Shown here one piece after another: positions 607-63,037 of a stretch of 64,000 nt of DNA. The stretch is from Zootoca vivipara (Eukaryota). The translations under genes and the position numbers were made by a program. The notes beneath the pieces are model-generated. The model had not been told where the DNA came from, did no database searches, and saw only the letters and a list, made by a program, of their open reading frames with translations. The stretch covers positions 44,020,001 through 44,084,000 of the forward strand of contig NC_083276.1 in the NCBI RefSeq assembly GCF_963506605.1, written 5' to 3'. The number at the start of each line of letters is the position of its first letter. The first letter of the stretch is position 1.

Positions 607-14777
<14,171 letters not shown>

Positions 14778-20215: not shown

Positions 20216-20580
20216 GTCTAGAGACACAATGGAGTGTGCCTCCAGGGGCAAAGCCAAACTGCTGAAGAACCACAGAAGTGACCTCTCCAGGGCACAAGCT
20301 TGGGCAGTGTGTATGGAGGTCCTGGCTTGCCCAGTTGACAAGACCCCCCTCTCGACCTCATTGATGTAGTCTAAAGGAAAGCAGAGAAATGTTTAGCACC
20401 AGCTTGACAGCACTGTGGAAACAACAGTTCCATGAAGTTCACTGGGTGACCTCAGGCCAATCAGTCTGACCTAACTCCTTGTAAGAAGGATGAAATAGAG
20501 TGGTGAAACCATGTATGTCACTTTAGGGGCAGAAAGGAAGGATATACTGTAAATGTAATAAACAAACTACATAAGTAAAT

Positions 20581-20813
20581 AAAATAAAAAAATTCCTTCC
20601 AGTAGCACCTTAAAGACAAACTAAGTTTGTCATTGGTATGAGCTTTTATGTGCATGCACACTTTTTCTGTTTCAGTGTATCTGAAGAAGTGTGTGCATGC
20701 ACATGAAAGCTCATACCAATGACAAACTTACTTGATCTCTAAGGTGCTACTGGAAGGAATTTTTTAGTTTTGTTTCGACTACGGCAGACCAACATGGCTA
20801 CCTACCTACGGTA
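20581..20813. mobile_element. Penelope-like element remnant (inverted terminal repeats) with hammerhead motif
   Basis: Palindromic arms aaaattccttccagtagcacctta...; 13-bp direct repeat tacataag(t/c)aaat flanks it. Confidence 0.8.
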
Positions 20814-24520: not shown

Positions 24521-24612
24521 GTTAGGGATTCGTGAAGGAATGTGGCCAACCGGCTTCCTCTCCCCAGAGCTGCCCTATATTTCATGCTACCTGTATATCA
24601 TTACTACATAAG

Positions 24613-24702
24613 CAAAATGAAAAAATTCCTTCAGTAGCACCTTAAAGACCAACTAAGTTTATATTTTGGTATGAGCTTTCGTGTGCATGCACACTTCTTC
24701 AG
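24613..24702 (-). mobile_element. Single-arm Penelope-like remnant
   Basis: Same arm sequence as the 20581 and 48266 copies. Confidence 0.75.
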
Positions 24703-25130: not shown

Positions 25131-25266
25131 CAGGCACCCCCAAACTGCAGCCCTCCAGATGTTTTGGCCTACAACTCCCATGATCCCTAGCTAACAGGAC
25201 CAGTGGTCGGGGAAGGTGGGAATTGTAGTCCAAAACATCTGCAGGGCCGAAGTTTGGGGATGCCTG
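25131..25266. mobile_element. Palindromic hAT MITE (136 bp)
   Basis: TIRs CAGGCACCCCCAAACT / AGTTTGGGGATGCCTG; perfect 8-bp TSD GTCAAGGA. Confidence 0.92.
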
Positions 25267-30109: not shown

Positions 30110-30198
30110 AATCGAGGAAGACAAATATGTAACTGTTTTAAATGGTTTCAACAGAAATGAAACCATTTAAAACAGTTACATATTTGCCTTCCTCGATT
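30110..30198. repeat. 41-bp inverted repeat with a 7-nt loop
   Basis: Arms 30110-30150 and 30158-30198, one mismatch. Confidence 0.95.
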
Positions 30199-30942: not shown

Positions 30943-31854
30943 GTAATTACATTAGATTATTCTCTTTCTCCTGTGCTTGTGTAGTGGAAAGTAGACCTCA
31001 TATTAAGGAAAGCTATTTAGGATGCATGAAGCCCTATCATAGTAAATGAGATTTGCTGTCCAAAATGGCTTCTGTACCACTGAAGAAGAAACCTCTCTTA
31101 ATACGTCAAGCTTTTAATTTAGAAAACAAAAATACTGTTTTCAGAATATTGCTATTTGAAATGAGCAATATAACCTAGTAGGATCTATTCAGATTCAGGA
31201 ATATAACATCATGCTCAGTTACATGAAACTCTGTATATAGTGTGATTACTAAATGTCTTTATAAGTCCATATGGCTGAAAATAAATCTCTTTTTTGTTTT
31301 AGTCTTTGGAAAGCACAAGGAGAATTCTTGGCATGGCCATTGAGGTAAGGAAAAGCTTTTGCGGGAGAGAGAGATGAGGAAGAACAAATCGAAATGTTTG
31401 AGAGCAGTTCATTCCTGCAGTTCTGGCACCAGCTGTTGCTATTTTTAAAGCGTGTGGGTGCCATTATGAGGCATGTGTAGTTGATGACTATGGGTGAAAC
31501 AGCTTTGCAACTTTAAATATTTGCATTGCTGCTGTATTTAGGGTTCAAATTCAAAATTGATTAGCTGTCGGATACTTGCATCTGAATTGCTCAACTTCTG
31601 CAAGATTCTGAACATACTTTTATCACAAAAAATGGACTTCCTTGAGGTTTACATGGTACTAATGCAAATATTGTACTCTTCACTAGAAACTCTGTAGAAT
31701 GACCTGTTGTAGTCCAAACTTGTGCCCAATTCTAGCATTAGATTTTACTGGTTGTGTATCTCCTATCATTTTTTTTCTTCCTTACAGTCCCAAGATACAG
31801 GAATCAAAACTCTCACCCTGCTAGATGAACAAGGGGGTGAGTTGTGCATGTGTA

Positions 31855-31888
<34 letters not shown>

Positions 31889-33762
31889 TTAGTTCAGCTT
31901 GAATGATCTACAAAACAGCTTGACCGAATGTGCTGAAATTTTGACACAACATCACATGCAAATACGAGATTAATATAAGACAGTTTGCGTGGACAGATGT
32001 AACACGTGGGCCACGTAAAAAAACCCAAAACCCTGTGTTTCAGAACACACAACTCACCCAAAAGTGCATGCTGGGAAATAGAACGGAGAAGCAGCGTCTC
32101 CATTGGCTGCATACAATCAGTGGCATCACAAAATTCCACGGCAACCAACTGAAAACGGCCTTTTGCAGCAACAAGGCCCAGCATTGCCCAGCCGAATGAA
32201 TAGGCTGCAGCATTGCCCAGCCGGAAGAACTGACTAGGCCGCAGTGGATGAGTCCGGGGGGTGGGGTGGGGGGAGGAGTCAAAAGGGGGGCTCTGAGGGC
32301 CCATTTAACAGACTAAGCCAAAGTTGGGCCTACAGGGGAGTCTGAAGGGGGACTCTGAGGGCCAGTTTAACAGACTAAGCCACAACAACGTGTGGCAGAG
32401 CCAGCTAGTGACAGATAGATAGATGGATGGATAGATAGATAGATTCGATTCGATTAGAATGATGGTTCTTACATTGGCTTGCTCAATACGATCTTTGTTG
32501 GTTTCAGCCTGGAATACAAAACATAGCATAAGACTGCTACTAAACTAGAAAGATGAAAACAAGCTGTTTATATCATGCTGTGATTCAACGGTTTCTTCAA
32601 GAGCTGGATCAGAATAAGTTTGTTGATAATATTATGGCTTGGGTTATCTAAAGTATATTGCGTGCAGCATGCAGTGTTTTTTTTTTTTTACTTCAGTTTT
32701 GAGACCTGAGGCACATGAATATTGTGTGTTTGTTTGTTTGATTGTTTACCCGCCCTTCAACTTAAGATCCCAGGGTGGGTTGCAACATTAAAACACAACA
32801 TTAAAACCAGTTTAAAACAGATTACAATAATTAAAAATAAGGTGCGTTCTAAAACTATGCACCTCAAGTGTCAAAATCCAGGATAAATAGGTGTGTCTTC
32901 AGCACCCCCCCCCCCCGGAAGTTGTATAATGAAGGTGCCAGATGCACCTCTAGGGAGGAGGTTCCACAGCTTAGGGGCCACCACAGAGAAAGCCCTCTCT
33001 TGCTCCCCCACTCCAAACCTCTGAGGGTGAAGGAACTACCAAGAGGGGCCCCTCTGCTGAACTCAGCATCCGAGAGTGTCTGTAGGAAAGAAGGCGGTCT
33101 TTCAGATATTTGGGGCCTGAGTCCACCCAGGTGTGGATACTGGTGTGATTCACTTGCATATTATTGGTATTCAAAAAAGTTTCTCTTGCAACTCCAAAGT
33201 TACTTTTTAATGCATTTCCTCTGGTTTTTTCTTTTTTTTAAAAAAAGAAGCATTTTGAACACAAACCATTAAAGTTCTCATCTGAAGATCAAGCATATTG
33301 CAGCATTTATGTTCTCTAAAATTCCTTTTCTTTATACTTTTCTTAGAACAGTTAACCCGTATAGAAGAAGGAATGGACCAGATAAACAAAGACATGAGAG
33401 AAGCCGAGAAGAACTTGACAGAGCTCAACAAGTGTTGTGGTCTCTGTGTCTGTCCTTGCAATAGGTCAGTTAAAGGCAGGTTGATGAATTCCAAAATTCA
33501 AGGGGGAAAAATGAGGCCATTGAGAAATGCTCAGAAGATCAAGATTGGGAGTTTTTTATAAAAAAACTGGTGTGCTTTAGACTATTTCCCCAAGTTTAAG
33601 TGAAAGTTCTAAATTTTTTAGTATCCTTGAACCTGGTTATGTGTAAGGGCAAAAGAATAAAGTAACAATAAAAGCTTGGATGACCTTAGTTACCATTATT
33701 GAATACAGTGTCAGTATTGTTTTTGTTAAAATAATACCTGGTTGGTATCATTAAGGTACAGA

Positions 33763-33811
<49 letters not shown>

Positions 33812-36800
33812 TAGGTTGACTAGAAGCAAGGAATATTTGGAAATGCTTTGAGAGCTTGGCAGGCAGGAGTAAGATATACATTCTAAATACCGTACCTGTT
33901 TTCTTCTTCCTTTTGCTATCATATTCTAACTCCTTTTTCCTGGAGAGTGCTTAGCTTGTTTGAGAGCTTTTGTGATAGTTCTAAATATTCTTTTTTTGAC
34001 ATATGCACATTGGAGAGATCTATGGAATCTATTTCAGTTTACTTAAGCAGAGGAAGAGGGACAATATAACCTTCTAGTAATTTTGGGATGGTCTGGCCTT
34101 AACACAAGTAGTGAATACAGCACTCGCAGAATTAAGTTTCAGTACTAACCCCACTTACAAGGAAGTGACCCCCATTGAATTTAGTAGGACCTTCTTCTGA
34201 TTAGACGAGGATTGCAGTCTTAATCGTTTTTTCCTTCTCCCTGTGTTAGGGTTAAGCTGCTCCCCCCCCCCTAAACACAAACATAATCTCAGCTGTACTT
34301 TTGAAATAGTTTGTTTGCTAACAACTATTTATCTGTTTGCTGGTCTTACTGCTCACTCTTTTCTCATTCTCTCTCCTAACCACCCCACTTTTCCTTGCTT
34401 AATAAAATGAAGATTTAGCAGCAGAGGTTGGATTCGCTTAACTGGTCAAAGTGGACTTTAGAAAAAGGTCAATCTTATGAAGCAGCCTGTACTGTTAACC
34501 AGCTGCCTGAAGGTGATATTCTAACTGGGTGCATATATGCATGTGCATGCTGTCTTAACATGCAAGCTATTTTGTGATGGTCCGTAGTTGTGTTTGTATC
34601 TGTGCTATGTCGCTTATAGATTGTGTTTAAACTATTTGTTCTGGCCTCATAAACCTGATATCAACCTAGGATGATACTATGGGTGATATTTGGTTGTAAA
34701 TCTATTGGATTTTGTTTCAGGAAAATTGCTGGATTGTATACAATGGGGAAAATGTTGGAGGAATATTGTGAAATGATACTAAAAGCTAACAGTGGGGGTT
34801 TTCTAGTCACCGTTAGCTCACATAAAGTTCCAAAACTGCACGGGGAACCTATAGCTCTCCAGATTTTGATGGACTCCAGCTCCTATCTTGCTTGAGTGCT
34901 GACTGAGACTCATGGGAGTTGGGAGTCCAAGAACATCTGGAGGACCACAGATTCCCAATCCCTCATGTTTACTATTCCGTGAATCATTATCTTACATACA
35001 ACTTGTTAAAAACTCTAGTGATGATTTGCATTTGGTCATCCAATTCAGTAGTACCTTGTTGTGAGTCCGCCCCATTTAGCGACCATTTCTTGGAATGTCC
35101 GCAGCAAACCCGGAAGTACCGGAACAGGTTACTTCTGGTTTCGCCGTTCGCACAGAAGTGCTAAATTGTGCTTCGTGCATAGGCAGAAGCACAAAACCGC
35201 TCATGCGCAGAGCGGCGCTTTGTCGAGCGTCCGGTGCTCCGGAACAGATCCCAGACTCAAGACAAGGTGTCACTGTACTGTATTAAAATTATGAACTACT
35301 GATACTCCATTCATCTGTCCAAAAATATAATGCTGGGAGATTATACCGTACATTATTTCTTCTTAAACACGCATTGTAGTCCTATGTCTTAGACTGTAAT
35401 TTGGTTGATTTTCTTTTAACATAGCAGCCATTAGTGGCAACAATGAGGCTGACGTGTAAGAAAACAGCTCGGATACCAAAGCAGTCCAAGATTTAAATAT
35501 AACATACGAACTTTAGTAAAATAAAATTGTTGTTTTTATTTTTGTATAAGATTGCTTCCAGTGTGAAATTAAATGTCTTAAATTCACTTGCTATATGACA
35601 TTTTTGGTGCACACACAAAGCTCAGTGGAAATGTAAAGAATGTGTATATGAAAACATGAAAACACATCAGGAAGTCATCTTCCTATGGGATACATCTTCT
35701 GTGGCAAACCTGGGGCTATTACTCTGTCATGTATGAAACAGTCCTTTCTATTACTTGTTGTATTGCACATTGGGTTTGTTAAAACTTTATATCTTTGATC
35801 TAATAATGTGCGGTCTGGCTTTTTTTGTAGAACAAAGAATTTTGAGACTAGTAGAGCTTACAAGACAACTTGGGGTGATGGTATGGAGAATAATCATGTA
35901 GTGTCTAAACAACCAGGGCGTGTTGCAAACAATCAGCAACAGAATTCGGGAGGAACAACAACTGGAGGCTACATAAAACGGTAAGATACTTCTCCTGCCC
36001 ACTCCTGAATATTTATAGGACCAAATGCTTCTTTCTCTGCAATAGTAGTGGCTGCATTTTGAAAAGCTTGAGGACAAACCTTTTGACTTGGTCCACACAA
36101 TCAAATCTTTGCTTCATTAGCCAGGATATACATAAGCTCTATGCAGTTGCACACAGCTGCCATGCTCCTGATTCACTTTTCCCTTTGTGTGAGTGGAGGA
36201 AACAAGCCAAGAAGCCATAGTTAACCACAGCATCTCATTACTTTTGAAGCAGGAACTATAGTTAATGGATTCCATACAATTCAGAATATAAAGTCATGAA
36301 AGTTGACTTCTGAATCCTGGCTTGACTGGAAGCCATTAATCACCCATTTTATAACTAGAAGCTGTTATCCAGATACCATTTCTGGAATCTTTTCTACTTT
36401 GCACCAAGGGGCTATCCAGAGATTCACAGAGCTTCTGATTTGATCATTCAAACATGGCTATTCTGTGTAATTCCGAGACACTTCTAGTTGATCTATAGTG
36501 TCTCTAGGGGATTATATCACTTTCCGATTCAATTTTTCAAACAAACTTGCGTAGAAACCTCTATAGCAGAAAATACTTCTGAAAACGTGGGATGCAATAA
36601 CATTCAGGAGAAAGGAACTTGGGATTTCTCAATGTTGGCTTCCCTTGATACTTTCAACAGGGTAACAAATGATGCCAGAGAAGATGAAATGGAAGAAAAC
36701 CTAACTCAAGTTGGAAACATATTGGGGAACCTGAAAAATATGGCCGTGGAGATGGGCAACACAATTGATACACAAAACCAGCAGATAGACCAGATAAACA

Positions 36801-37739
36801 TTAAGGTAAGAAACAAAGAATTCAACTGTTGGTGTCTTAATGTTGGTAAATCTAGTGTCCAGGTGGACAAGTTAATAATTCTTCAAGGCCACAGTGCTAA
36901 GCTGTAGATACACTGTGTATTTTTGTTACATTTGTTGTTGTTTTAGTTTTCTATACACCACTTAAATATATTTTAATATATTAAGTGATAGAGAAGTGGT
37001 CTAAACAGAAACACATTGCTCTTTATTATATATGTGTGCTACATTTTTCCTAATAATTTGATTATATCACTATTACTGCCAATAAAAACTTAACTGAATA
37101 GGAAGATTTAGCTGCTTTTGGAAAACACACTGGCATAGTTTGGGTTGGACTTCCTTGAAGCAGGGTGTGCCAGATATGGAGTGTGGTCCCAAGATTGTCT
37201 TCCATCATGGTTTTGCTGTTCTTAACATACAACAGATCTTGGGGAAGGAAGTTGGCTCAGATACATAAGACCCAACTCCTTTAGGTCTTCATTGATGAAA
37301 ATGAGTGCATTGAATCTTGCTCTTCTAGAACACTTCTAGAAGCCAGCTTAAATCCTAAACTGCTGGTGTAATAGTCAGCCAGTAACCAGTTCACCCAGGG
37401 TCCAAAACATTCCTTCCAGTACTTTAAGCATATCTTCATTGGTAGGTGGTATTTGCTCTAAATTCTGAATGAGTTGCAGGAGTGAAAGGCTCTTCTGCTC
37501 AGATGGCTTCAATTACCACTTAACTACTAGTCTGTCTCTTGAATCACCGTAATACAAACAAACTTATTCTGAGCCAGCTCCTGAAGAAATGGTTTAATCA
37601 CAGCATGATATAGTTTGTTTTCATCTTTTTAGTGTAGTACGGTAGCAGTCTTATGCTATATTTTGTATTCCAGGCTGAAACCAACAAAGATCGTATTGAG
37701 CAAGCCAATGTACGAGCCAAAAAACTCATTGAAAACTAG
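30886..37739 (+). CDS. SNAP23: Synaptosomal-associated protein 23 (Qb/Qc SNARE), 208 aa
   Basis: Join 30886-30942, 31303-31344, 31788-31836, 33347-33464, 35831-35980, 36661-36805, 37674-37739 = 627 nt. [33 protein letters not shown]...CCGLCVCPC (palmitoylation cluster)...[13 protein letters not shown]...RAKKLIEN*. Confidence 0.97.
31303..31344 (+). CDS. SNAP23: SNAP23 coding exon 2
   Basis: [14 protein letters not shown]; ttttag/gtaagg. Confidence 0.95.
31788..31836 (+). CDS. SNAP23: SNAP23 coding exon 3
   Basis: [16 protein letters not shown]; ttacag/gtgagt. Confidence 0.95.
31856..32408 (+). mobile_element. Non-autonomous Helitron
   Basis: 3' hairpin GCCACA-acaacg-TGTGGC (32379-32396), then CTAG|T at 32405-32409; (TA)n-expanded 5' end (exact start uncertain); no TSD seen; internal ~36-bp duplication. 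Confidence 0.75.
32449..32624 (-). pseudogene. Inverted partial duplicate of the SNAP23 last-intron 3' end plus terminal exon
   Basis: Reverse complement aligns to ~37557-37733 and translates [22 protein letters not shown]. Confidence 0.92.
32735..33125 (-). mobile_element. L2 LINE 3' fragment
   Basis: [10 protein letters not shown]...R.L.SAEG motif; tail ttgtttacccgccctt. Confidence 0.75.
33347..33464 (+). CDS. SNAP23: SNAP23 coding exon 4
   Basis: [40 protein letters not shown]; tcttag/gtcagt. Confidence 0.96.
33766..33808. repeat. (CA)n microsatellite
   Basis: Seen directly. Confidence 0.95.
34830..34963. mobile_element. Decayed palindromic hAT MITE related to 25131-25266
   Basis: ctccagat..tggactccagctcc ... 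gggagttgggagtcca...catctggag arms. Confidence 0.6.
35046..35275. mobile_element. Tigger-like MITE (CpG-rich)
   Basis: CAGTAGTACCTTGTTGTGAGTC ... GACTCAAGACAAGGTGTCACTG|TA. Confidence 0.75.
35831..35980 (+). CDS. SNAP23: SNAP23 coding exon 5
   Basis: [17 protein letters not shown]...GGYIKR; ttgtag/gtaaga. Confidence 0.95.
36661..36805 (+). CDS. SNAP23: SNAP23 coding exon 6
   Basis: [28 protein letters not shown]...INIK; caacag/gtaaga. Confidence 0.96.
37674..37739 (+). CDS. SNAP23: SNAP23 last coding exon
   Basis: [21 protein letters not shown]; acceptor ttccag. Confidence 0.95.
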   Translation, partial: AETNKDRIEQANVRAKKLIEN

Positions 37740-38794
37740 CAGCCTTCTTCCAATTCTTTATCCAACTGAAGACGTCCATTTTAGTCTACAAACCTCAATT
37801 TCCAAAGAAGAAAGATGGCAGGATTCAGAAGAGGGAACAAAGCAGGACATGCATCATATGGCTTCTTTTGTTGCTTGTATACAGACTTGATTTGAGAATC
37901 CAGGAAAATAGCACAACAGAGACTTTGCTTCCTTACTCTTTTTAATATATCCTCAGGGTTTCGTTTTCTGGCTTCAAATATTTCCATGGTACCTTCTCCC
38001 CCTTTTGCAGTAGAATAGTAGAGTGTGAGGCAACTGAGCAAAGGCAGAAGAGGATGCATTCAGTGAATGTCATTACCTCACTCAATATTTCATGTCATCA
38101 CTAAAATGGTGGATGAGTAATTTTCATGAACTTTGTCTTTAAGCTGACCTTAGTTTACAAAACACCTAGATTTCATGGTCAAGCCATACATGATGGGGTG
38201 GGATGGGGGTGCATTTTATATTCTTATAATTGGAATTTGTAGTTCAGCAACTACTACTACTGAGAATGGGGCTTTAAAACACATCATTGTTGACATTCAA
38301 TATATATAGGAGAGAACTACATTTTGTGAGCCATAGCAATTCTCATTTGGATACCAAGGGGATGAGTAGTCCAGCTACACACAAAAAACCTGTATAGTTG
38401 GACATGGGACTCTCACAAAAATTTTAGGAGTTTATCCCCCATTTTATTCTGGAAAGACTGGGTGTTTGCCACCAACCCTACTAGTCATTGCTCTACCCAG
38501 AGATACTTTATGGTGGCTGGAGGACCTAGGGGAGGTGAAAGGGCCTACACAGCACCTAATGATCAACTCGGGATTCCAATCAAAACACTTCCAGGTGAAG
38601 AGCTCTGTTGCAAATTGTTGTATGAGTTGTCAGAAATCATCTTTTCCTTTTCCGGTAAATGCTGCATATTATTTGGACGCTGGTAGTGCTGAAAAGAGAT
38701 TTTGATCTGCGAAATGTTCCATCAAAAAGCAACATTTGGAAAGTTATGCAGAGCTTAAGGTTGAGTGAAAACTATTTTGTAATGCTGTTTCCTA

Positions 38795-38800
38795 AATAAA
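38795..38800 (+). terminator. Candidate SNAP23 poly(A) signal (a distal AATAAA also lies at ~40124)
   Basis: AATAAA about 1.05 kb after the stop codon; usage not verifiable from sequence. Confidence 0.4.
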
Positions 38801-40495
38801 TTCATCCTTCCCTACACAAACTATGAATCTAGTTGTGTACCAAAAAGCCAACATCTGGAGAGCAGCATCTTGAGATATTTATTCAGAGCAAAACACTTAC
38901 AGGATTTCTAGAGAGACCTCCAAAGCAGGGTACAATCTAGTTTCCAATGAGAACAAAAACTATGGTTGTTACAGTGAGTTTGCATCTACCGTGGCTTGAT
39001 AAAACTCAGTTCTTTAAATTGTTTTTAATTGACTACAGTTGTGTGCTCACCTGGTTTTCTTCAGCAGCTCATTACAAAATAAGAGTTGTGTCATCTTTTA
39101 GTTGGAACCATATGCGTGTTAAGCTTCAAACCTGTACTGAAATATGTGAAAGACTGAAGTCAGTATTGAAACATAGCTTTGCTGCTTCTATCTTTCTTAT
39201 CATGAGACTGAATGTGTGTTTATTTTACAAACTTTAAAGCTGTGGCTTGGCTATAGGTTATTCCTTGCTCTGCAAATTGTGATCCCTCAAGCTTGAATGT
39301 ACACCATCAACTATGTGTTGTGTAATCCTGAAGCAGGTAGCAAAGCTTGAAGCCCATGAGGAACTGCCATTCATGACTTCTAGACTACATTTAATTTGAC
39401 GGGTTGCAAGTTGTTCAGGCCTTCTGTAGTGAGTGCTTAGCATATAACCTTCAGTTCATTTCTGTTTCAGGATGAAGGTGCTTGATTTAGCTTTCTTAGA
39501 GGACTGGTTCAACAAAAAATGTTACAGTTCCAAGGATTCTCAAGAAAGTTTTAGTTCACTCTTCTAATTAAGAGTTCACCAAACAGCATTGGAATCATTT
39601 TGTTTTCTAAAGAGATACGTACTTAGTGCTTTGTGCTGCTGTATATGTTTAAGCTGGATTTTTTTTATCATATGTAGAAATTATAAATTGATCATAATTT
39701 GAGGGTGGAGCGTAGTTCCCAACCCTTCCATAGAAGGAAAAATAGTTCATGTAGACAGTTTCTGAGTGCTTTTTCTTTGTAAAAAGACTGCCCAGTAAAT
39801 AGCTGTGCCTTGTGGTGGTTGCTGCCAGACAAGAGCTTAAAACAAATTGGCTCATTGTATTGCCACTTCCCATAGATGACAAGAGGATACCTCATTTTTC
39901 TACCGCTCTGCATGTCAATTCCAACTGAGCCATAATTTTTTTATTAAGACAAAGCTCAGTCTTCCATGTAACCTGCTGTCAACAAGGGTGAGGTGGTAAT
40001 TCTAGCTGTGTAGGGTAGAAACTGCGCACATCACTGTCGGTTTGTTTATTGTATTAGTAATAGTGAAACATGCAATCCTCAAAGCTGGAAATGGCAGTTC
40101 GCACACTAAACCTTGTCTATGGAAATAAAATGGTGAATATTCAAGTGCCGTAATAACTGTTACTGTTAATTTCAGATTTACCAGGCTACCATCACAGATA
40201 GTGAAAATGTGGCTTTCTAATGCACATGTGTTCAGTAGCCTCTGGAAACACTACAGCAGTGTGAAAAAGTACTTGGATGTGGATAGCATATTTTCTTGTG
40301 TTATAACTGAAACTTTGAATTCTTAAATAGCTTTTAACTGCATAGTGCTCTACATCAAACTATACCTTCTTTTTTGCTTTCTAGATTGCCCATTTTAAGC
40401 TGTAATTAAGCGAATGCCTCAGGTTTCTACTTGCTGGACTGAATAAATTAACTTATGGTTGCCTGCATTGCCTGTCTCTTTCAAAAACACATGTA

Positions 40496-40791
40496 CAGTG
40501 GTGCCTCGACTTACGAATTTAATCCGTTCCGAAGGCACCTTCGTAGGTCGAAAAATTCGTAAGTCAAAAAGCGCCATTGGAAACGCGATTTCCCATAGGA
40601 ATGCATTGGAAACGGAAAAATCCTTAAGTCGAAGCAACCCCATCTAAAAATTCGCAAGTCGAAAAAACCCTATCTAAAACTGCCGCGGTTTCCGTTTGGA
40701 TGTCGAGAAATTCATAAGCGTGCGGCCATTTGCCCCATTCGTAAGTCGAAAAATTTGGTTGTCGAGTCGTTCGTACGCCGAGGTACCACTG
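40496..40791. mobile_element. Tigger-like MITE
   Basis: TA|CAGTGGTGCCTCG...CGAGGTACCACTG|TA. Confidence 0.88.
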
Positions 40792-40961
40792 TAATGCTGA
40801 CTAGCATTGAAAATCGAACTTAGTACTACCTTGTTGCCTACTTTAGAGAGTAAGCTACAAGTGATTTTTCTAATCAGAACTAACTGAATTATTCTTTGTT
40901 GCTGCTGTGGCAGCCTTTTCTAAAAACAACATATTTTATGTAGCAAAAGAGGAAGTACAGA

Positions 40962-41251
40962 TGTCCATTCTGAAGATCAGCCCTGAGTGCTCACTGGAAG
41001 GACAGATCCTGAAGCTGAGGCTCCAATACTTTGGCCACCTCATGAGAAGACTCCCTGGAAAGGACCCAGATGTTGGGAAAGATGGAGGGCAAAAGGAGAA
41101 GGGGACGACAGAGGACAAGATGGTTGGACAGTGTTCTCGAAGCTACGAACATGAGTTTGACCAAACTGCGGGAGGCAGTGCAAGACAGGAGTGCCTGGCG
41201 TGCTATGGTCCATGGGGTCACGAAGAGTCGGACACGACTAAACGACAACAA
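40962..41251 (+). mobile_element. BovB LINE 3' end
   Basis: SPECSLEGQILKLRLQYFGHLMRR; MLGKMEGKRRRGRQRTRWLD...AWRAMVHGVTKSRTRLND. Confidence 0.92.
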
Positions 41252-48265: not shown

Positions 48266-48516
48266 ACAGGTAGGTAGCAGTGTTGGTCTGAGTCGAAGCA
48301 AAATAAAAAAATTCCTTCAGTAGCACCTTAAAGACCAACTAAGTTTATATTTGGTATGAGCTTTTGTGTGCATGCACACTTCTTCAGATACACTTGAAAC
48401 TGGTTTCAGGCGGACTACTGGTTTCAAGTGTATCTGAAGAAGTGTGCATGCACACAAAAGCTCATACCAAAATAAAAACTTAGTTGGTCTTTAAGGTGCT
48501 ACTGAAGGAATTTTTA
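48266..48516. mobile_element. Penelope-like element remnant (inverted repeats)
   Basis: Long inverted arms; perfect 15-bp TSD taattgattcaagtt (48251-48265, 48517-48531). Confidence 0.85.
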
Positions 48517-49439
48517 TAATTGATTCAAGTTTGGGTTCCACAGCTATAGGAATCACAAAGGCCTATGGATTTTTAACTTCCCAATGTCAACACTGTTTCT
48601 TTTCTGCACCACCCAAGTTCCAGTATATGCATATAATATAACAAAATCCTTATTCACTCAATAACAGTATTTAAACAATGAGTCTCAGTTCCCCTGAACC
48701 AGCTTTTGCCTGCTCTCCAAGCCGCCTCCTCACTCCTCTCAGTTGAAGCTGGGAAGACAGGCTGTGGGTAGGTGAAGACAGTTCTGATCTAAATAAAGAG
48801 GACAAGATGAAACCCAGCTGCCCCATCTTCCTCCATCTCAGCTGGCGGAATTGAAAACAACAACACTTCGCCTAACTTTTCACTTCCACATATGGCAAAC
48901 AATATGCCATCTCTATCCAGCGAAGAGGCTGTATCCATCGCAGGCGATGCTCAGAGTAAGCCCACTGAAATTAATAGACATGACTAACACTAATTTCAAT
49001 GGGTCTACTCCGAGTACAGTACTTGGATACAACCCAGGCGGACTATGGGTGGGGTGGGGAAAAGAGAGCAGCATATTTATCTAAAATGGGCGTTGTCCAA
49101 GTTGTCCTACGTTAGAGGGAAAGAGCCCAAGTTTATCTTTATTCAGAGAAGTCAGCCACACTGAATTCAATGCGACTAGGCTGCAAGCTTCAGCATACTG
49201 GCTTGGAGCAGCAACCATCGCATTCAAACAGGACTTACTTCCGAGTAGACACACACTGAAGTGGGCTGCCCAGATGCGCTGCGCCTGCCACACAGTTTTA
49301 ACTTCCCAGGTGCAGCTACTTTTAGGTAAAGATGCACAGGCTATAAACGGAGGGATCTCTTCCCTGCTGCTCCTAGAAAAGAGGACGGGAACCAGGGGCT
49401 TTCTCGGGAGAATGACCTAAGAGGTGGACAAGCACCTGA

Positions 49440-56462: not shown

Positions 56463-59162
56463 CTGTAACGTGAATTATTGAGCAATCTCCCCTCCCCGGC
56501 AAATCCCACAGATTATGTTAACTATTTTACAGTGGTAACAACTTGAAAGATTCCTAGGTGATACATACTGTATTTTTCCGTGTATAACACGCCCCTATGT
56601 ATAAGACGCCCCCTATTTTTGGGGACTCCAAATTGAGAAAATGGAGGGAGATTATATCTGTGTATAAGACGACCCACAATTGTGAACATAATTTTTAAAT
56701 AAAAAAACCTAGTCTTATACACACAAAAGTACGGTACTGTATTTTTAGCCTCCATAGTGTGAAATACCACCTCACAAAGATAGTATCATTTTCCATACAT
56801 TTTTTTCTTTTTCATGCAGGCATGTAGTAGAATTGTTGGCGTCGGCAGTGGCTTTCATTGAAAAATTAGAAACCCATCTAACCACAGTAAGGAGCATTCC
56901 TCAAATACCTCTAGTTATGAAAAACATGGTAAGTTGTCTGTCCTATAACTTTGATAGCAAAGTAGTGGCTAAGAGCATGGAAGTCTTAGCTGGAAGTCTC
57001 CAGTTCAAATCTCACCAGGCTATGGATTCCCTGGGTTGTCTCACTCAGAATGCTGGTTAATAGACCTGTACCTGACATAAGGAATGTGAAGCACTAACTT
57101 CTGCTTCACTTCACACTAGGCTTCCCCTGGAATTAGAGAAACTGTGAGTCTGTATCTCTGTCCTTGAAGAAAGGAGATTCAATTGCTGAATCAATTGATC
57201 AGAAAGTTCAATTCCATCTATTTGAGTCTGAATAGTGACTGGTTTTCTCTCCTGCTACAGGTATTAATTTCCCGTCAGTGCTAAGATGATTGTATTATCA
57301 CTAATTATTGCTATTGTGATGGGTCACACTAGTTATTCTGCATACTGTACAGTTCCGTTGGACTGTATTTTATTTTGCTTTTCATTGCCATTTAATTCCA
57401 ACTCTTACATTTTTCCTTTATTTAACATCCCCTCATTAAAATACAGTGGTACCTCAGTTTACAAACACAATTGGTTCCGGAAGTCTGTAATTAACCTGAA
57501 GCGTACTTAACCTGAAGCGAACTTTCCCATTGAAAGTAATGGAAAGTGGATTAATCTGTTCCAGACGGGTCCGCGGAGTACTCAACCTGAAGCGTACTTA
57601 ACCCAGGGTATGAGTGTAATTGGTTCCGGAAGTCTGTACTTAACCTGAAGCGTACTTAACCTGAAGCAAACTTTCCCATTGAAAGTAATGGAAAGTGGAT
57701 TAATCTGTTCCAGACGGGTCCGCGGAGTACTCAACCTGAAGCGTACTTAACCCAGGGTATGAGTGTAATTGGTTCCGGAAGTCCGTACTTAACCTGAAGC
57801 GAACTTTCCCATTGAAAGTAATGGAAAGTGGATTAATCTGTTCCAGACAGGTCTGCTAAGTACTTAAACTGACAATACTCAAACGAAGGCGTACTTAAAC
57901 CGAGGTATGACTGTAGTACCAAAGTGATGTACAACAAAGCAGTTAAATACAAATCAATTCAGTATACGATAAAAACTATTTTAAAAAGCCAGCATATCAC
58001 TGTTACAGCAGTCAGGTATCATTCAACTGATACCAGAAGCAAGGGAAAGCTTGAGTGAATAGATATGTGTTAAACAGCCGGCAGAAGCTGTTAAATAGGT
58101 GCTTGCCATATCTCAAGAGTAAGAAGGGTCATTGCTCAGGCTAAGGGCACAAGATGAGCCCCCTGCAATCTGGCATAATTAATAGGGCCTCCTCCAAAGA
58201 TCTTGGTGAACGAGCAGATCTCTATGGGAGTTGCTCTTTCAGATAACCTGGTTCTAGGGAATTATCAGTTAATAACAAAACATTAAACTTGACTTAATAG
58301 CAAACTTGGCATTTCTTAATACCCATGTGTTCATTACACATATCTGCCAGATGAGCATTACATAATGCATCTGATAAAGTGGACTCTGCTCCACAAAAGA
58401 TTATGCCAGGATAAATTTTTTAGTCTTTAAGGTGCCTCAGCTCTTGGTTTTTGCTGTAACAGACTAATATGGCTACCCCTAAAGCTATATGGAGGGACAC
58501 TGTGGTCTAAACCACTGAGCCTAGGGCTTTCCGATCAGAAAGTCGGCAGTTTGTATCCCTGCGACAGGGTGAGCTCCTGTTGCTTGGTCCCAGCCCCTGC
58601 CAACCTAGCAGTTCAAAAGCACGTCAAAGTGCAAGTAGATAAATAGGTAGCGCTCCAGCGGGAAGGTAAACGGCGTTTCCCTGCACTGCTCTGGTTTCGC
58701 CAGAAGCGGCTTAGTCATGCTGGCCACATGACCTGGAAAAACTGTCTGTGGACAAACGGCGGCTCCCTCGGCCAGTAAAGCGAAATGAGCACTGCAACCC
58801 CAGAGTCGTTCACGACTAGACTTAACTGTCAGGGGTCCTTTACCTTTTGAAAGCTATATGAAGGAATCTTTCCCTGGAGTGCGTTGACAAATGCCAGGGC
58901 AGTTACGCTAGTTTCACTTCCCTTGTGCAGCAGTCCCTGTGATGAGTTCTTATGTTGTTGAAGTTTTAGCATAGTGCGCTAAAATACTTGTTTTCCTATT
59001 TCATTCCAGGACAGTGCACTAACAGAGATGGACTTGTTAGTAACAGACACAAAAGCACTGGCAGAACAAATACTGGAGTGGAGAGAGAAAGTAAAGGAGA
59101 TCTTTGAAAATTCACAGCTGACTACTGAATCAGATTCCTGGTTCAGAAGTATAACTCTGTAA
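49991..59162 (+). CDS. HAUS2: HAUS augmin-like complex subunit 2 (CEP27), 215 aa
   Basis: Join 49991-50080, 52181-52273, 53597-53666, 55497-55629, 56820-56928, 59010-59162 = 648 nt. MASSNPW...[53 protein letters not shown]; syntenic between LRRC57 and STARD9. Confidence 0.94.
50484..50796 (-). mobile_element. Sauria SINE
   Basis: Reverse of the gggtggcgctgtgggttaaaccacagagcctagg head; tatttatctacttgcac core; aaaggtaa tail. Confidence 0.88.
51175..51362 (-). mobile_element. tRNA-derived SINE with CR1-like tail
   Basis: Minus-strand head gggctgtggctcagtagcggagcatc...gttcaatccctg. Confidence 0.65.
52181..52273 (+). CDS. HAUS2: HAUS2 exon 2
   Basis: [16 protein letters not shown]...LQAEISE; tttcag/gtaaaa. 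Confidence 0.9.
52380..52900 (-). mobile_element. Degraded CR1 fragment
   Basis: catagagttggaggg..., tgcttgaagacctccaatgagggagag, tgtggtgcccagaactggaca. Confidence 0.6.
53597..53666 (+). CDS. HAUS2: HAUS2 exon 3
   Basis: [23 protein letters not shown]; gtatag/gtaagt. Confidence 0.93.
55497..55629 (+). CDS. HAUS2: HAUS2 exon 4
   Basis: [20 protein letters not shown]...IEAIFHR; ctgtag/gtaaca. Confidence 0.93.
56414..56463. repeat. (CAA)n microsatellite
   Basis: Seen directly. Confidence 0.95.
56568..56734. mobile_element. Tc2/mariner-like MITE
   Basis: TA|ctgtatttttccgtgtataa ... cttatacacacaaaagtacgg|TA. Confidence 0.8.
56820..56928 (+). CDS. HAUS2: HAUS2 exon 5
   Basis: [27 protein letters not shown]...KNM; atgcag/gtaagt. 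Confidence 0.93.
57444..57913. mobile_element. Tigger-like MITE with three 149-bp tandem units
   Basis: TA-flanked TIRs; aattggttccggaag at 57469, 57618 and 57767. Confidence 0.88.
58367..58480 (+). mobile_element. Older Penelope-like terminal remnant
   Basis: gcatctgataaagtggac..ccacaaaagattatgc...ttagtctttaaggtgcc...cagactaatatggctacc. Confidence 0.6.
58494..58848 (+). mobile_element. Sauria SINE, near full length
   Basis: Head ctgtggtctaaaccactgagcctagg, conserved core, cctttacctttt tail; TSD aaagctatatg. Confidence 0.9.
59010..59162 (+). CDS. HAUS2: HAUS2 last coding exon
   Basis: [26 protein letters not shown]...SITL*; acceptor ttccag; AATAAA at 59654 and 59667. Confidence 0.92.
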   Translation, partial: DSALTEMDLLVTDTKALAEQILEWREKVKEIFENSQLTTESDSWFRSITL

Positions 59163-61075
59163 TACTGCACACTTCCCGCCATGCCTTTTCCTTCCCAATT
59201 CTCAGGCTACTTAGCAATTTTGTGTGTTGATAAAATGCATGTGTTCTATCACATTTAAAGTCACTTGTGTCTGTCTGAAATGTATATTTGTACGTAGAAC
59301 TAGGGCTATGTAGAAATTGACAACGGATGTTAAATGGCTCTCTTGAGGTTGTATTTTAAAGAAGCAATTTTATGATGTTGCCTTAACAAGATCAGCTTCA
59401 TGTACATAGGTTTTATATTTTATAGAAACATTATCTATTTTTAAAAGTGAGACCACTCATATCTTGGTATAAAACTTCAATCAGAATACTGGACTATAGA
59501 CTATTTTGTATGGGTGGGAAACCTTTGGATTCCACCCTATCTTCATGTGCATTTATGAAAATCTGTAGCTTGATACTTTTGCCCTTCATACTGTTGAGTA
59601 CTGTAGTAGAAAATAATGCAGAGGAAGAGTATGGGAAACAGTATTCAGTTAGTAATAAACAAACTAAATAAATACTTTTTTCTCTTAGTTTGTATTTCAA
59701 AGAGAGAAAAATTAAGCAACTATACAGATGAGCCTGTCACTGTGCAAAACTGGCTAGCAAATGCCTGTGTTTCATAATTCTCCATCAGCTATGCTTGATT
59801 TGTTATAGCTTGTTATGGCTCATCATCAGTTTCTCATCTCCATCTGATCTCTGTTCCAGCCACTGAGAGAAAGCACAAGATAGATGTGCTGCTAGGTAAA
59901 CAGCATCCTGAGGATATCAAGACTGTCTTCTCCCAATGACAGGACCTGTGTTCCTTTTCACATGTTAAAACAAAAACCACAAGCAGGGAACATCCCACAA
60001 TAAACGTCCATGTGCATACAACCTGGCAAGCAGGCATTTGTGTGTTTATAACCTAAACATGCTTTCTTAATAGAAATGGATGGGTAGTTTTTCTTTCACT
60101 CTCATACATTGAAGGTGGTAATTCTAACTCTTCATAATCCTTATATTTGTTTGTTCCTAAGTGACATGTAGGCAAATGTTTAAATTTGCCCAGGCGGTTA
60201 GCCAGTCTTATATACATTTCCTTTGAACTAAGTTGTGCTGTATTGAATTCAGGGGTGTGTGTGTGTAGAGATTTGCAGTTTTTAGTTTAATATGCTTCAA
60301 AGACATTCATATTGGTTCCTGAATTTATTTCTGCTGAATTCTCTTTAAAGCAGTTAACCTGTTACTGATATTAACAGACAACTTAAAACTATACTAATTT
60401 AAGCAGATATTTCTATTAGAGTACATTCACAAAGTTTACAACAGGACTTAATTTATCAGCACAGTCCTATTAAATCTGAATAAATTTACTCCATCAGTGT
60501 GTTTAGGACTGCAGCCTCAAATCCAACGTGCTACAATTTAATTTAAAAGAAATGAATACAGTACCTGAGAAGGTTTCAGGAAAAATAATGAAAAGCAAAT
60601 AGAATTTCTCAAAAACTTTTGTTTGTATTTATGGAGAGTTGCAAAACATTGTGGGTCCGTGATCCATGCATTGCACTAGGAGATGTTTAAATACAACTAG
60701 CTGGTAAATTCCTACATGTTACACAGATTGTTTCATTTGAGCAATCTCAAAATCTTTTCACAAAGATTTATGGTGTCAAATGGAACTTCATACCGCTATA
60801 TGCTGTCTGAGAAAAAGGAAGATAACAGTGGTTGACTCCTGACAGGTGATGACAACATTGAAGCAGATAACAACTTAGTAATGACACAAATTTGAATGCT
60901 CATCTCTAATAGTCTTGGAGTGCTGGTCCATTTGTCACTAGGGGGCATAATTGTGAATGATTCCCTTTTGTTACCAGTAACAGTCTGAAAGTTTACATGC
61001 TTTCCACCACAGCCCCGCTTTATTTTTAACTTTCAGCTCACAGTGTAGTTTTGAACAAGGTTATAGTTAGCAGTA

Positions 61076-61641
61076 CAGTGGTACCTCGGTTTATGAACAC
61101 AATTGGTTCCGGAAGTCTGTTCATAAACTGAAGCGTTCATAAACTGAAGCGAACTTTCCCATTGAAAGTAATGGAAAGTGGATTAATCCGTTCCAGACGG
61201 TCCGCGGAGTAACCGTTCATAAACTGAAGCGAACTTTTCCATTGAAAGTAATGGAAAGTGGATTAATCCGTTCCAGACGGGTCCGCGAAGTACTTAAACT
61301 GAAGCGTTCATAAACTGAAACATGGGTGTAATTGGTTCCGGAAGTCTGTTCATAAACTGAAGCGTTCATAAACTGAAGCGAACTTTTCCATTGAAAGTAA
61401 TGGAAAGTGGATTAATCCGTTCCAGACGGGTCCGTGAAGTACTTAAACTGAAGCGTTCATAAACTGAAACATGGGTGTAATTGGTTCCGGAAGTCTGTTC
61501 ATAAACTGAAGCGTTCATAAACTGAAGCGAACTTTCCCATTAAAAGTAATGGAAAGTGAATTAATCCGTTCCAGATGGGTCTGCAGCGTTCATAAACCGA
61601 AAATTCATAAACCGAGGTGTTCATAAACCGAGGTTCCACTG
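61076..61641. mobile_element. Tigger-like MITE with tandem internal units
   Basis: TA|CAGTGGTACCTCGGTTTATGAAC...GTTCATAAACCGAGGTTCCACTG|TA; units start at 61101, 61330 and 61479. Confidence 0.88.
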
Positions 61642-62908
61642 TATTGGCTCTTTATTGCAAAATGGAAACAATACTAAACTCATAGTACTTTGAAGGCAAA
61701 TACATTAAAGACACCAAAGCTCCTCTGAAAGTGAAAAAGTTCTGCATGTTTAGTCGTGTCCAACTCTTCGTGAAAGTGCTGCATAAATAGTATTTTTAGC
61801 AGTATGAAGATAACTGTACAGTGTGAATGCGCACTGTCTTTCCTGGCAGATAGAAGGTTTGATTGTATTCACCCAATACTGTGTCACCTGCACTGGCTGC
61901 CAGTATACTCACTAGATGAAAAGCTAGTGCTTCCCTCTTAAAAGCATTTCATATGCTGGGCCCCATATTTCTGCAACCACCTCCCTAGTATTAACTATGC
62001 CACTTTTAGTTATTGAGTCAAACCTTGCACCAATGCACCATATACAGACTTATCAGGAACATAACAGGGCCTTTCCTTCATCAGCTGCTCCAAGGTTTTG
62101 GAATTATTTCCCCTCAGGTGTGTGCAGTTTCTCCTTAGTGGGTAGCTGCACTTTATATTTTTGATTTGCCCTTGTGAGTTTTTTAATTTAATTTTGAATA
62201 GTTTTGTTAGTATAAATCATCTGGAATCTAGTAAAGGTGGCTACCAAGAATTTTGTAGCAATACAAAAATTATTTTGTTGTAATACTACATAAGCTGACT
62301 CTTCTACTTATGTGCAGTATCTTTTTAGGGAAGTTATATATGAGAATCTGCATTTTAGCAGGCCACTATAGATCTACTCATGTATACACTAGAATGGACC
62401 CAAAGAAGCCAAGGATCCAGGAAGCATGCCATCAAGGGTGTTAGATGAGGCTCAGAGCAGTGGGACCACAACAGATAAAGCTCAAATTGCAAGATGGGGT
62501 GTTCAGATAGTGAACAAAGGTGTGTATCACAGCAGCAAGCAGGGAGTTCCAGTCAGGTAAGGTCAGTCATACGGTCAGAAGGCTCTTTGTGGCTTACAGG
62601 TGTATCCACATATTGGTGATCAGTTTCTGGTCAACTCTATTGCCCAGTAATTGCTGGCATTTCTGCAAAGAATGCTGGATTAAGAACTTTGGCCTGATTC
62701 AGCAAAGGCGATTTATTCAGTACCTTTAGGATTGCTTACTACAGAATGATGTGCCAATCACACTTGACCTCTTTCTAAATAAAACAATGCACCAAGAAGA
62801 TTCCTGTTTTTGTTCTTCAAGGAAGCACGCTATCCTTGTTCTATGTTGTTCTTGAGAAGCCAGCTGTGTTTTTTTTTTTTTGACGCACATGTCTCACCCA
62901 CATGGGGT

Positions 62909-63037
62909 NNNNNNNNNNNNNNNNNNNNNNNNNNNNNNNNNNNNNNNNNNNNNNNNNNNNNNNNNNNNNNNNNNNNNNNNNNNNNNNNNNNNNNNNNNNN
63001 NNNNNNNNNNNNNNNNNNNNNNNNNNNNNNNNNNNNN
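62909..63037. other. Assembly gap (129 N)
   Basis: Run of N. Confidence 0.99.

Follow-up and report, generated by a model that had tools for sequence, protein, structure and literature searches.

The DNA analysed here is a 64,000-nt stretch of the Zootoca vivipara genome (assembly GCF_963506605.1, contig NC_083276.1, positions 44,020,001 to 44,084,000 of the forward strand), referred to below as the window and numbered from its first letter. On its plus strand lies a gene whose exons we read singly rather than as a joined protein model. A start exon is located near 30961, and a second coding exon was read from 31303 onwards. Coding exon 3 (31788–31836) ends in a donor that opens a 1510-nt intron (31837–33346), which is closed by the acceptor of coding exon 4 (33347–33464), the exon with the palmitoylation cysteine cluster. 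Coding exon 5 (35831–35980) encodes the linker, and coding exon 6 (36650–36805, with an approximate start) is followed by a GTAAGA donor. The last coding exon, with 21 residues and then the stop, occupies 37674–37739, with its acceptor AG at 37672–37673; both positions are corrected here relative to the preliminary description of this locus. Exon 5 matched the Pfam SNAP-25 family (PF00835, E = 1e-12) and exon 4 matched SNAP-25/SNAP-23 chains in the PDB. A protein search with exon 4 returned fragments from relatives, including one entry (P0072) that was 100% identical over the exon and differed in the intron read-through. These matches, together with the SNAP23-type cysteine cluster, the SNARE exons and the linker domain, identify the host from its sequence as a SNAP-25-family gene, which we take to be SNAP23 rather than SNAP25 on the type of its cysteine cluster and on its N-terminus. 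Upstream of the start-codon exon we also observed a near-perfect 41-nt hairpin (30110–30198; 98% complementary, with a 7-nt loop).

Several further elements were seen elsewhere in the window. On the minus strand, 2076–4346 contains a 757-aa open frame devoid of Pfam domains, which may be the large exon of the neighbouring gene, perhaps ZNF106-like judging by synteny. Three long palindromes, of 223 nt at 91%, 201 nt at 86% and 137 nt at 77%, were located at 48301–48521, 20577–20775 and 25131–25266, respectively; the first two and a fragment at 24610–24702 are mutually related, which suggests a foldback or MITE-like family. A separate repeat family (5108–5548, 57438–57915 and 61074–61643) consists of 149-nt tandem units that are 97% alike and are themselves built from 16-nt sub-repeats (GTACTTAACCTGAAGC), with shorter relatives at 10293–10539 and 11933–12170. 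Positions 62909–63037 are a run of 129 N.

The SNAP23 intron between coding exons 3 and 4 carries, at 32449–32631 and in antisense orientation, a reversed copy of about 180 nt of the gene's own last intron–exon junction. The reverse complement of this segment aligned with 37550–37733 on the plus strand, and in a lenient gapped alignment 159 of the 179 aligned bases were identical (159 matches, 20 mismatches and 9 gap columns). Under strict scoring, the reverse complement of 32463–32624 matched 37557–37719 with 147 matches, 11 mismatches and two indels (93%), the indels measuring 4 nt and 5 nt, and a repeat search recovered the same arms as two segments, 32449–32547/37635–37733 at 88% and 32569–32631/37550–37612 at 87%. 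Direct reading, the repeat search and both gapped alignments hence bear out the inverted match of the preliminary description, with limits that widen to 32449–32631 and 37550–37733. When the host intron was compared with the window by blastn, this was its sole significant match (E = 4e-56), showing that the inverted match is not due to chance, and a six-frame translation contained the last-exon peptide exactly twice.

Read on the minus strand, the copy opens with the 3′ part of the last intron (about 123 nt), crosses the AG and continues for about 60 nt into the last coding exon. The source arm accordingly has the branch region and the pyrimidine tract ahead of the AG, and after it the larger part of that exon. 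The longest identical run between the arms in the gapped alignment is 52 nt (37661–37712), composed of 13 bases of intron followed by the opening 39 of the exon, and spans the last 3′ splice site, in agreement with the roughly 52 identical nucleotides across the acceptor that had been reported before. For the more distal intronic part, the two indels described earlier were found again, and the substitutions numbered 11–12 instead of roughly nine. The drift described for the exon tail is visible in the six-frame translation (VRTIILIE versus VRAKKLIE), and its extent hinges on the alignment chosen. Ungapped, the tail shows 13 matches in 21 positions, and if a 6-nt deletion is placed in an A-run (source 37720–37725), it shows two substitutions and one indel, with homology ending at about 37730.

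The minus strand of the copy has features of its own. Its pyrimidine tract and AG are intact, and a C-to-A change at 32469 creates a strong donor-like GTAAGA after 39 exonic bases, giving a potential 39-nt antisense pseudo-exon within 32470–32529. A frame over the copy on the same strand is open for 74 codons from an ATG (32308–32529); the 74-aa sequence had no relative in the protein collection searched, a result that is uninformative on the copy in other assemblies.

The two arms belong to one transcription unit, about 4.9 kb apart on its sense strand, and would indeed be contained in a single pre-mRNA as had been claimed; mapping of the exons on the plus strand confirmed that they bracket coding exons 4–6. 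From the end of the copy it is 715 nt to the exon-4 acceptor downstream, and the exon-6 donor is followed after 744 nt by the source arm; about 424 nt of exon lie between the arms. Canonical sites are present at the would-be back-splice junction: the AG at 33345–33346 before exon 4 is a candidate back-splice acceptor, and the GTAAGA after 36805 a candidate back-splice donor. Using blastn at E < 1e-4, we found no second long-range inverted pair within the transcription unit, where all others are either local or extend past the gene.

The surroundings of the copy were then compared with those of its source. Both flanks (31885–32448 and 32632–33346), aligned with 36806–41000 on both strands, scored no better than shuffled sequences, and on this comparison the copy appears as a discrete patch, flanked by sequence free of homology to the last intron or the 3′UTR; a larger decayed duplication was rejected on the same result. 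At its exon-side end, the copy adjoins a tandem-repeat tract of three GAATC pentamers followed by TATC/CATC tetramers, which passes into an (AGAT)n array (32413–32444), the only microsatellite of its type in the window. Beyond the intron-side end there are about 50 nt of unique sequence, then, at 32677–33140, a T-run leading into minus-strand, SINE-like debris that is not repeated elsewhere in the window. The SINE-like tail ends in a (CAAA)n-type repeat, not in (ATCT)n, and its motif occurs once in the window. At the intron-side junction, the copy shares TAATA with the source, a possible 5-nt microhomology, and the other junction is blurred by the microsatellite. The host intron as a whole is rich in microsatellites and TE-like debris and is an ordinary landing place for filler DNA; an Rfam search of this intron gave sub-threshold chance matches only.

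Next to the copy, its left flank (31885–32410) was seen to be a G-rich element containing a tandem duplication of about 55 nt around 32296–32395, and its minus strand displays a CCAAT box, a CACGTG and the motif TTCCCAGCATGCAC, which resembles the ZNF143/Staf site. The element holds a 136-aa ORF that has no Pfam match, is not repeated in the window, and may represent either another captured fragment or the promoter of a transposon.

Taken together, the copy is probably an old, small, inverted intragenic duplication that has been decaying since, tolerated rather than maintained by selection. A patch of about 180 nt would have been copied from the junction of the SNAP23 last intron and last exon and put in backwards about 5 kb upstream, the likeliest route being a DNA-level template switch or a filler-DNA event at break repair or replication. 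We favour a DNA-level route because the patch is short, discrete and inverted and comes from a nearby template. A retrocopy of mature mRNA was rejected, as about 123 nt of the copy are last-intron sequence. The preliminary description had drawn the same distinction and concluded from the included intron that the duplication took place at the DNA level; its argument stands against a mature-mRNA retrocopy, and its conclusion is reasonable, though not compelling, because a pre-mRNA template carries the intron as well.

Such a template is at the centre of an RNA-mediated origin, in which a LINE reverse transcriptase would have changed template to SNAP23 pre-mRNA that was still unspliced, giving a short chimeric insertion. 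The tandem-repeat tract speaks for this route, lying at the exon-side (3′) end of the copy, where the microsatellite tail of a LINE would be expected. However, inspection of the copy edges showed neither a poly-A at that end nor a target-site duplication, and the microsatellite follows the fragment with no recognisable LINE 3′UTR in between. Moreover, eight large ORFs of the window, scanned against Pfam, are free of reverse-transcriptase or TE domains, and the nearby SINE-like tail is of the (CAAA)n type, as noted above, rather than (ATCT)n. On balance, we consider an RNA-mediated origin distinctly unlikely.

An assembly artefact, produced by a chimeric read or a fold-back, would also place a reversed copy near its source. 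Artefactual fold-backs are near-identical and adjacent to their source, whereas this copy has diverged by 11%, carries two indels, lies 5 kb away and has unique flanks; the divergence of its left part and the unique flanks rule out a recent event or an assembly fold-back, and the probability that we assign to an artefact of any kind is close to nil. Twelve runs from three studies contained at least 0.6 of the sampled words of 31700–39500, the copy accounting for only about 2% of these words. Across the same interval, DNA runs from these studies contained 0.60–0.94 of the sampled words and probable RNA contig runs 0.16–0.31, a share that corresponds roughly to the exonic plus 3′UTR fraction; the search also named three RNA raw-read runs, and none of these matches is specific to the copy.

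The differences between the arms are unevenly distributed. We counted 13 events in 89 sites in the left intronic part (37550–37641), 1 event in 71 sites in the middle (37642–37712), and, in the tail, 8 events in 21 sites ungapped or 3 in 13 with the A-run deletion; with that deletion the tail is not anomalous (p = 0.06–0.29). A run of at least 52 identical nucleotides would be rare under a uniform scatter of differences (p = 0.0075). Uniform scatter is the wrong null, however, because in the real gene the middle takes in the signals of the 3′ splice site (branch region, pyrimidine tract and AG) together with coding sequence. The contrast between left (13/89) and middle (1/71) gave a Fisher p of 0.0035, for segments that were defined with the data in view. 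Half the left rate is the appropriate expectation for the middle, because only the copy is free to change there, and on this expectation one event or fewer in 71 sites has p = 0.03, again for segments chosen post hoc. Constraint acting on the real splice site and exon thus seems to account for most of the 52-nt core, with a marginal residue.

This residue bears on a further possibility, that the near-identical middle (37642–37712) is an intrachromosomal gene-conversion patch over an older duplication. Both the uneven divergence and a count below that expected at half the left rate fit such a patch, and its size is in keeping with typical gene-conversion tracts, which are short. Nevertheless, the segments were defined post hoc, arms of about 180 nt that had already diverged would be poor substrates, and constraint on the source branch region, pyrimidine tract and exon explains most of the pattern; we regard conversion as unlikely. 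As it concerns the identity pattern only, gene conversion is compatible with an old duplication scar. The concentration of identity at the splice site, for which selection, conversion and chance had all been offered, would accordingly be traced mostly to constraint on the real junction; the marginally clean middle leaves some room for a short conversion patch, or for selection, and does not appear to call for the latter.

Consistent with the decay of a tolerated duplication, a signature of selection on a sense-strand duplex was not seen. Among the 12 intronic substitutions, 3 are transitions that keep a G–U wobble, 3 yield A–C mismatches and 6 are transversions, so that, in these 12 changes from one genome, there is no bias toward wobble-preserving change. 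The left part has a Jukes–Cantor distance of about 0.15, and the rate typical of lizards is roughly 1e-9 substitutions per site per year; with both copies drifting, these values would imply an age of tens of millions of years as a rough date, which becomes a maximum if errors were frequent in the founding synthesis. After insertion, the copy would have decayed as non-functional DNA and the real junction would have stayed constrained, leading to an identity that peaks over the splice site and the exon.

The pre-mRNA would thereby have gained, as a side effect, a long-range complementary pair around exons 4–6. Cofolding of the isolated arms gave a predicted energy of −243.4 kcal/mol, compared with −74.8 ± 3.6 kcal/mol for shuffled partners and with −31.6 and −36.2 kcal/mol for the single arms folded alone. 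The previously proposed duplex of about 170 bp, extending from the branch region through the pyrimidine tract and AG across most of the last exon, is thus also predicted here, at about 170–180 bp, with an energy that is expected for any inverted repeat of such size. Inverted repeats of 30–40 nt are enough for circularization in minigenes (Liang & Wilusz 2014, PMC4201285); both arms exceed this length and flank exons 4–6, the downstream arm being partly exonic. Exonic ADAR sites are typically set by pairing with an intronic complement (PMC1920255), and editing and splicing interact (PMC1920255 and PMC5991522). Of the 16 adenosines in the perfect exonic core, 12 would change the encoded residue if read as G. 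Low-level by-products are therefore plausible in principle: the arms could undergo A-to-I editing, and exons 4–6 might form a circle of about 424 nt. Pairing of the arms would be expected in a minority of transcripts. The 1.5-kb host intron must outlast about 5 kb of polymerase travel, which would limit the frequency of the duplex. In the literature on SNAP23 circRNA, we found nothing specific to such an architecture. In mouse, a Snap23 microexon is reported to be regulated by MBNL, QKI and RBFOX2 (PMC12064062).

A stronger interpretation would make the copy a selected, maintained cis-antisense element that, paired with the only terminal acceptor and the last codons of the SNARE helix, tunes splicing of the terminal exon, circRNA formation or recoding of the C-terminal SNARE motif. 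In its favour, the duplex is predicted to be very stable, the exons between the arms have canonical sites, the geometry is near ideal for known effects, the identical 52-nt core covers the splice site, and 12 of the 16 core adenosines would be recoding if edited. Against these points, the substitutions show no wobble-preserving bias, the remaining duplex has decayed by 11–15% with two indels, and constraint on the real gene would by itself lead to identity over the exon. Furthermore, hyper-editing of a housekeeping SNARE motif, or masking of the only terminal acceptor, would be likelier to harm than to help. We hence regard a selected element as very improbable, and the description of the copy as a built-in switch appears unsupported by the substitution pattern.

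As a probably old, decaying duplication, the SNAP23 pair belongs with intragenic inverted repeats and templated insertions, both of which are known kinds. It resembles the intronic repeats that drive circRNA formation, such as IR-Alu and mouse Sry (PMC4201285), in that the arms surround canonical exons within one pre-mRNA; at about 180 nt, they are above the 30–40 nt given there and lie within about 750 nt of the splice sites. Unlike IR-Alu, the arms are a duplication of the gene's own sequence and not a transposon pair, and unlike other circRNA-driving repeats, the downstream arm is not purely intronic and covers the terminal 3′ splice site and coding exon. The ADAR exon/ECS duplexes of the GluA2 Q/R and R/G sites (PMC1920255) likewise pair an exon with an intronic complement in cis, a pairing that is predicted here, and in SNAP23, as in these, the same sequence would be contested by splicing and editing. 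Known ECSs tend to be short, imperfect and deeply conserved and to lie near the exon, frequently in the neighbouring intron, whereas the SNAP23 complement is about 180 nt long and lies three introns upstream, about 5 kb off. With the docking/selector pairs of Dscam and the MAPT exon 10 stem, the SNAP23 pairing would have in common the sequestration of splicing signals, here the branch site, pyrimidine tract and AG. The Dscam and MAPT elements are short, conserved and backed by compensatory changes, and the SNAP23 pair has been seen in one genome.

Templated insertions arising by MMBIR or polymerase-theta end joining (PMC8421209) are likewise short, discrete, inverted patches from a nearby locus on the same chromosome, and like them the SNAP23 copy is free of flanking homology and has a possible 5-nt microhomology at one junction. 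It differs from the cases of PMC8421209 in being a probably old, germline-fixed event of a lizard, with its second junction masked by a microsatellite.

If the pair acts, an exon-complementary sequence or a circRNA-driving repeat would have been born from a tiny duplication of the gene's own junction, independently of any transposon, and this in a housekeeping SNARE gene with a functionally critical C-terminal helix. If, as we judge likely, the pair is inert, it would caution against predicting splicing or editing effects from complementarity alone, and this lizard would long have tolerated, within one of its genes, a near-perfect duplex of about 180 bp across a constitutive 3′ splice site.
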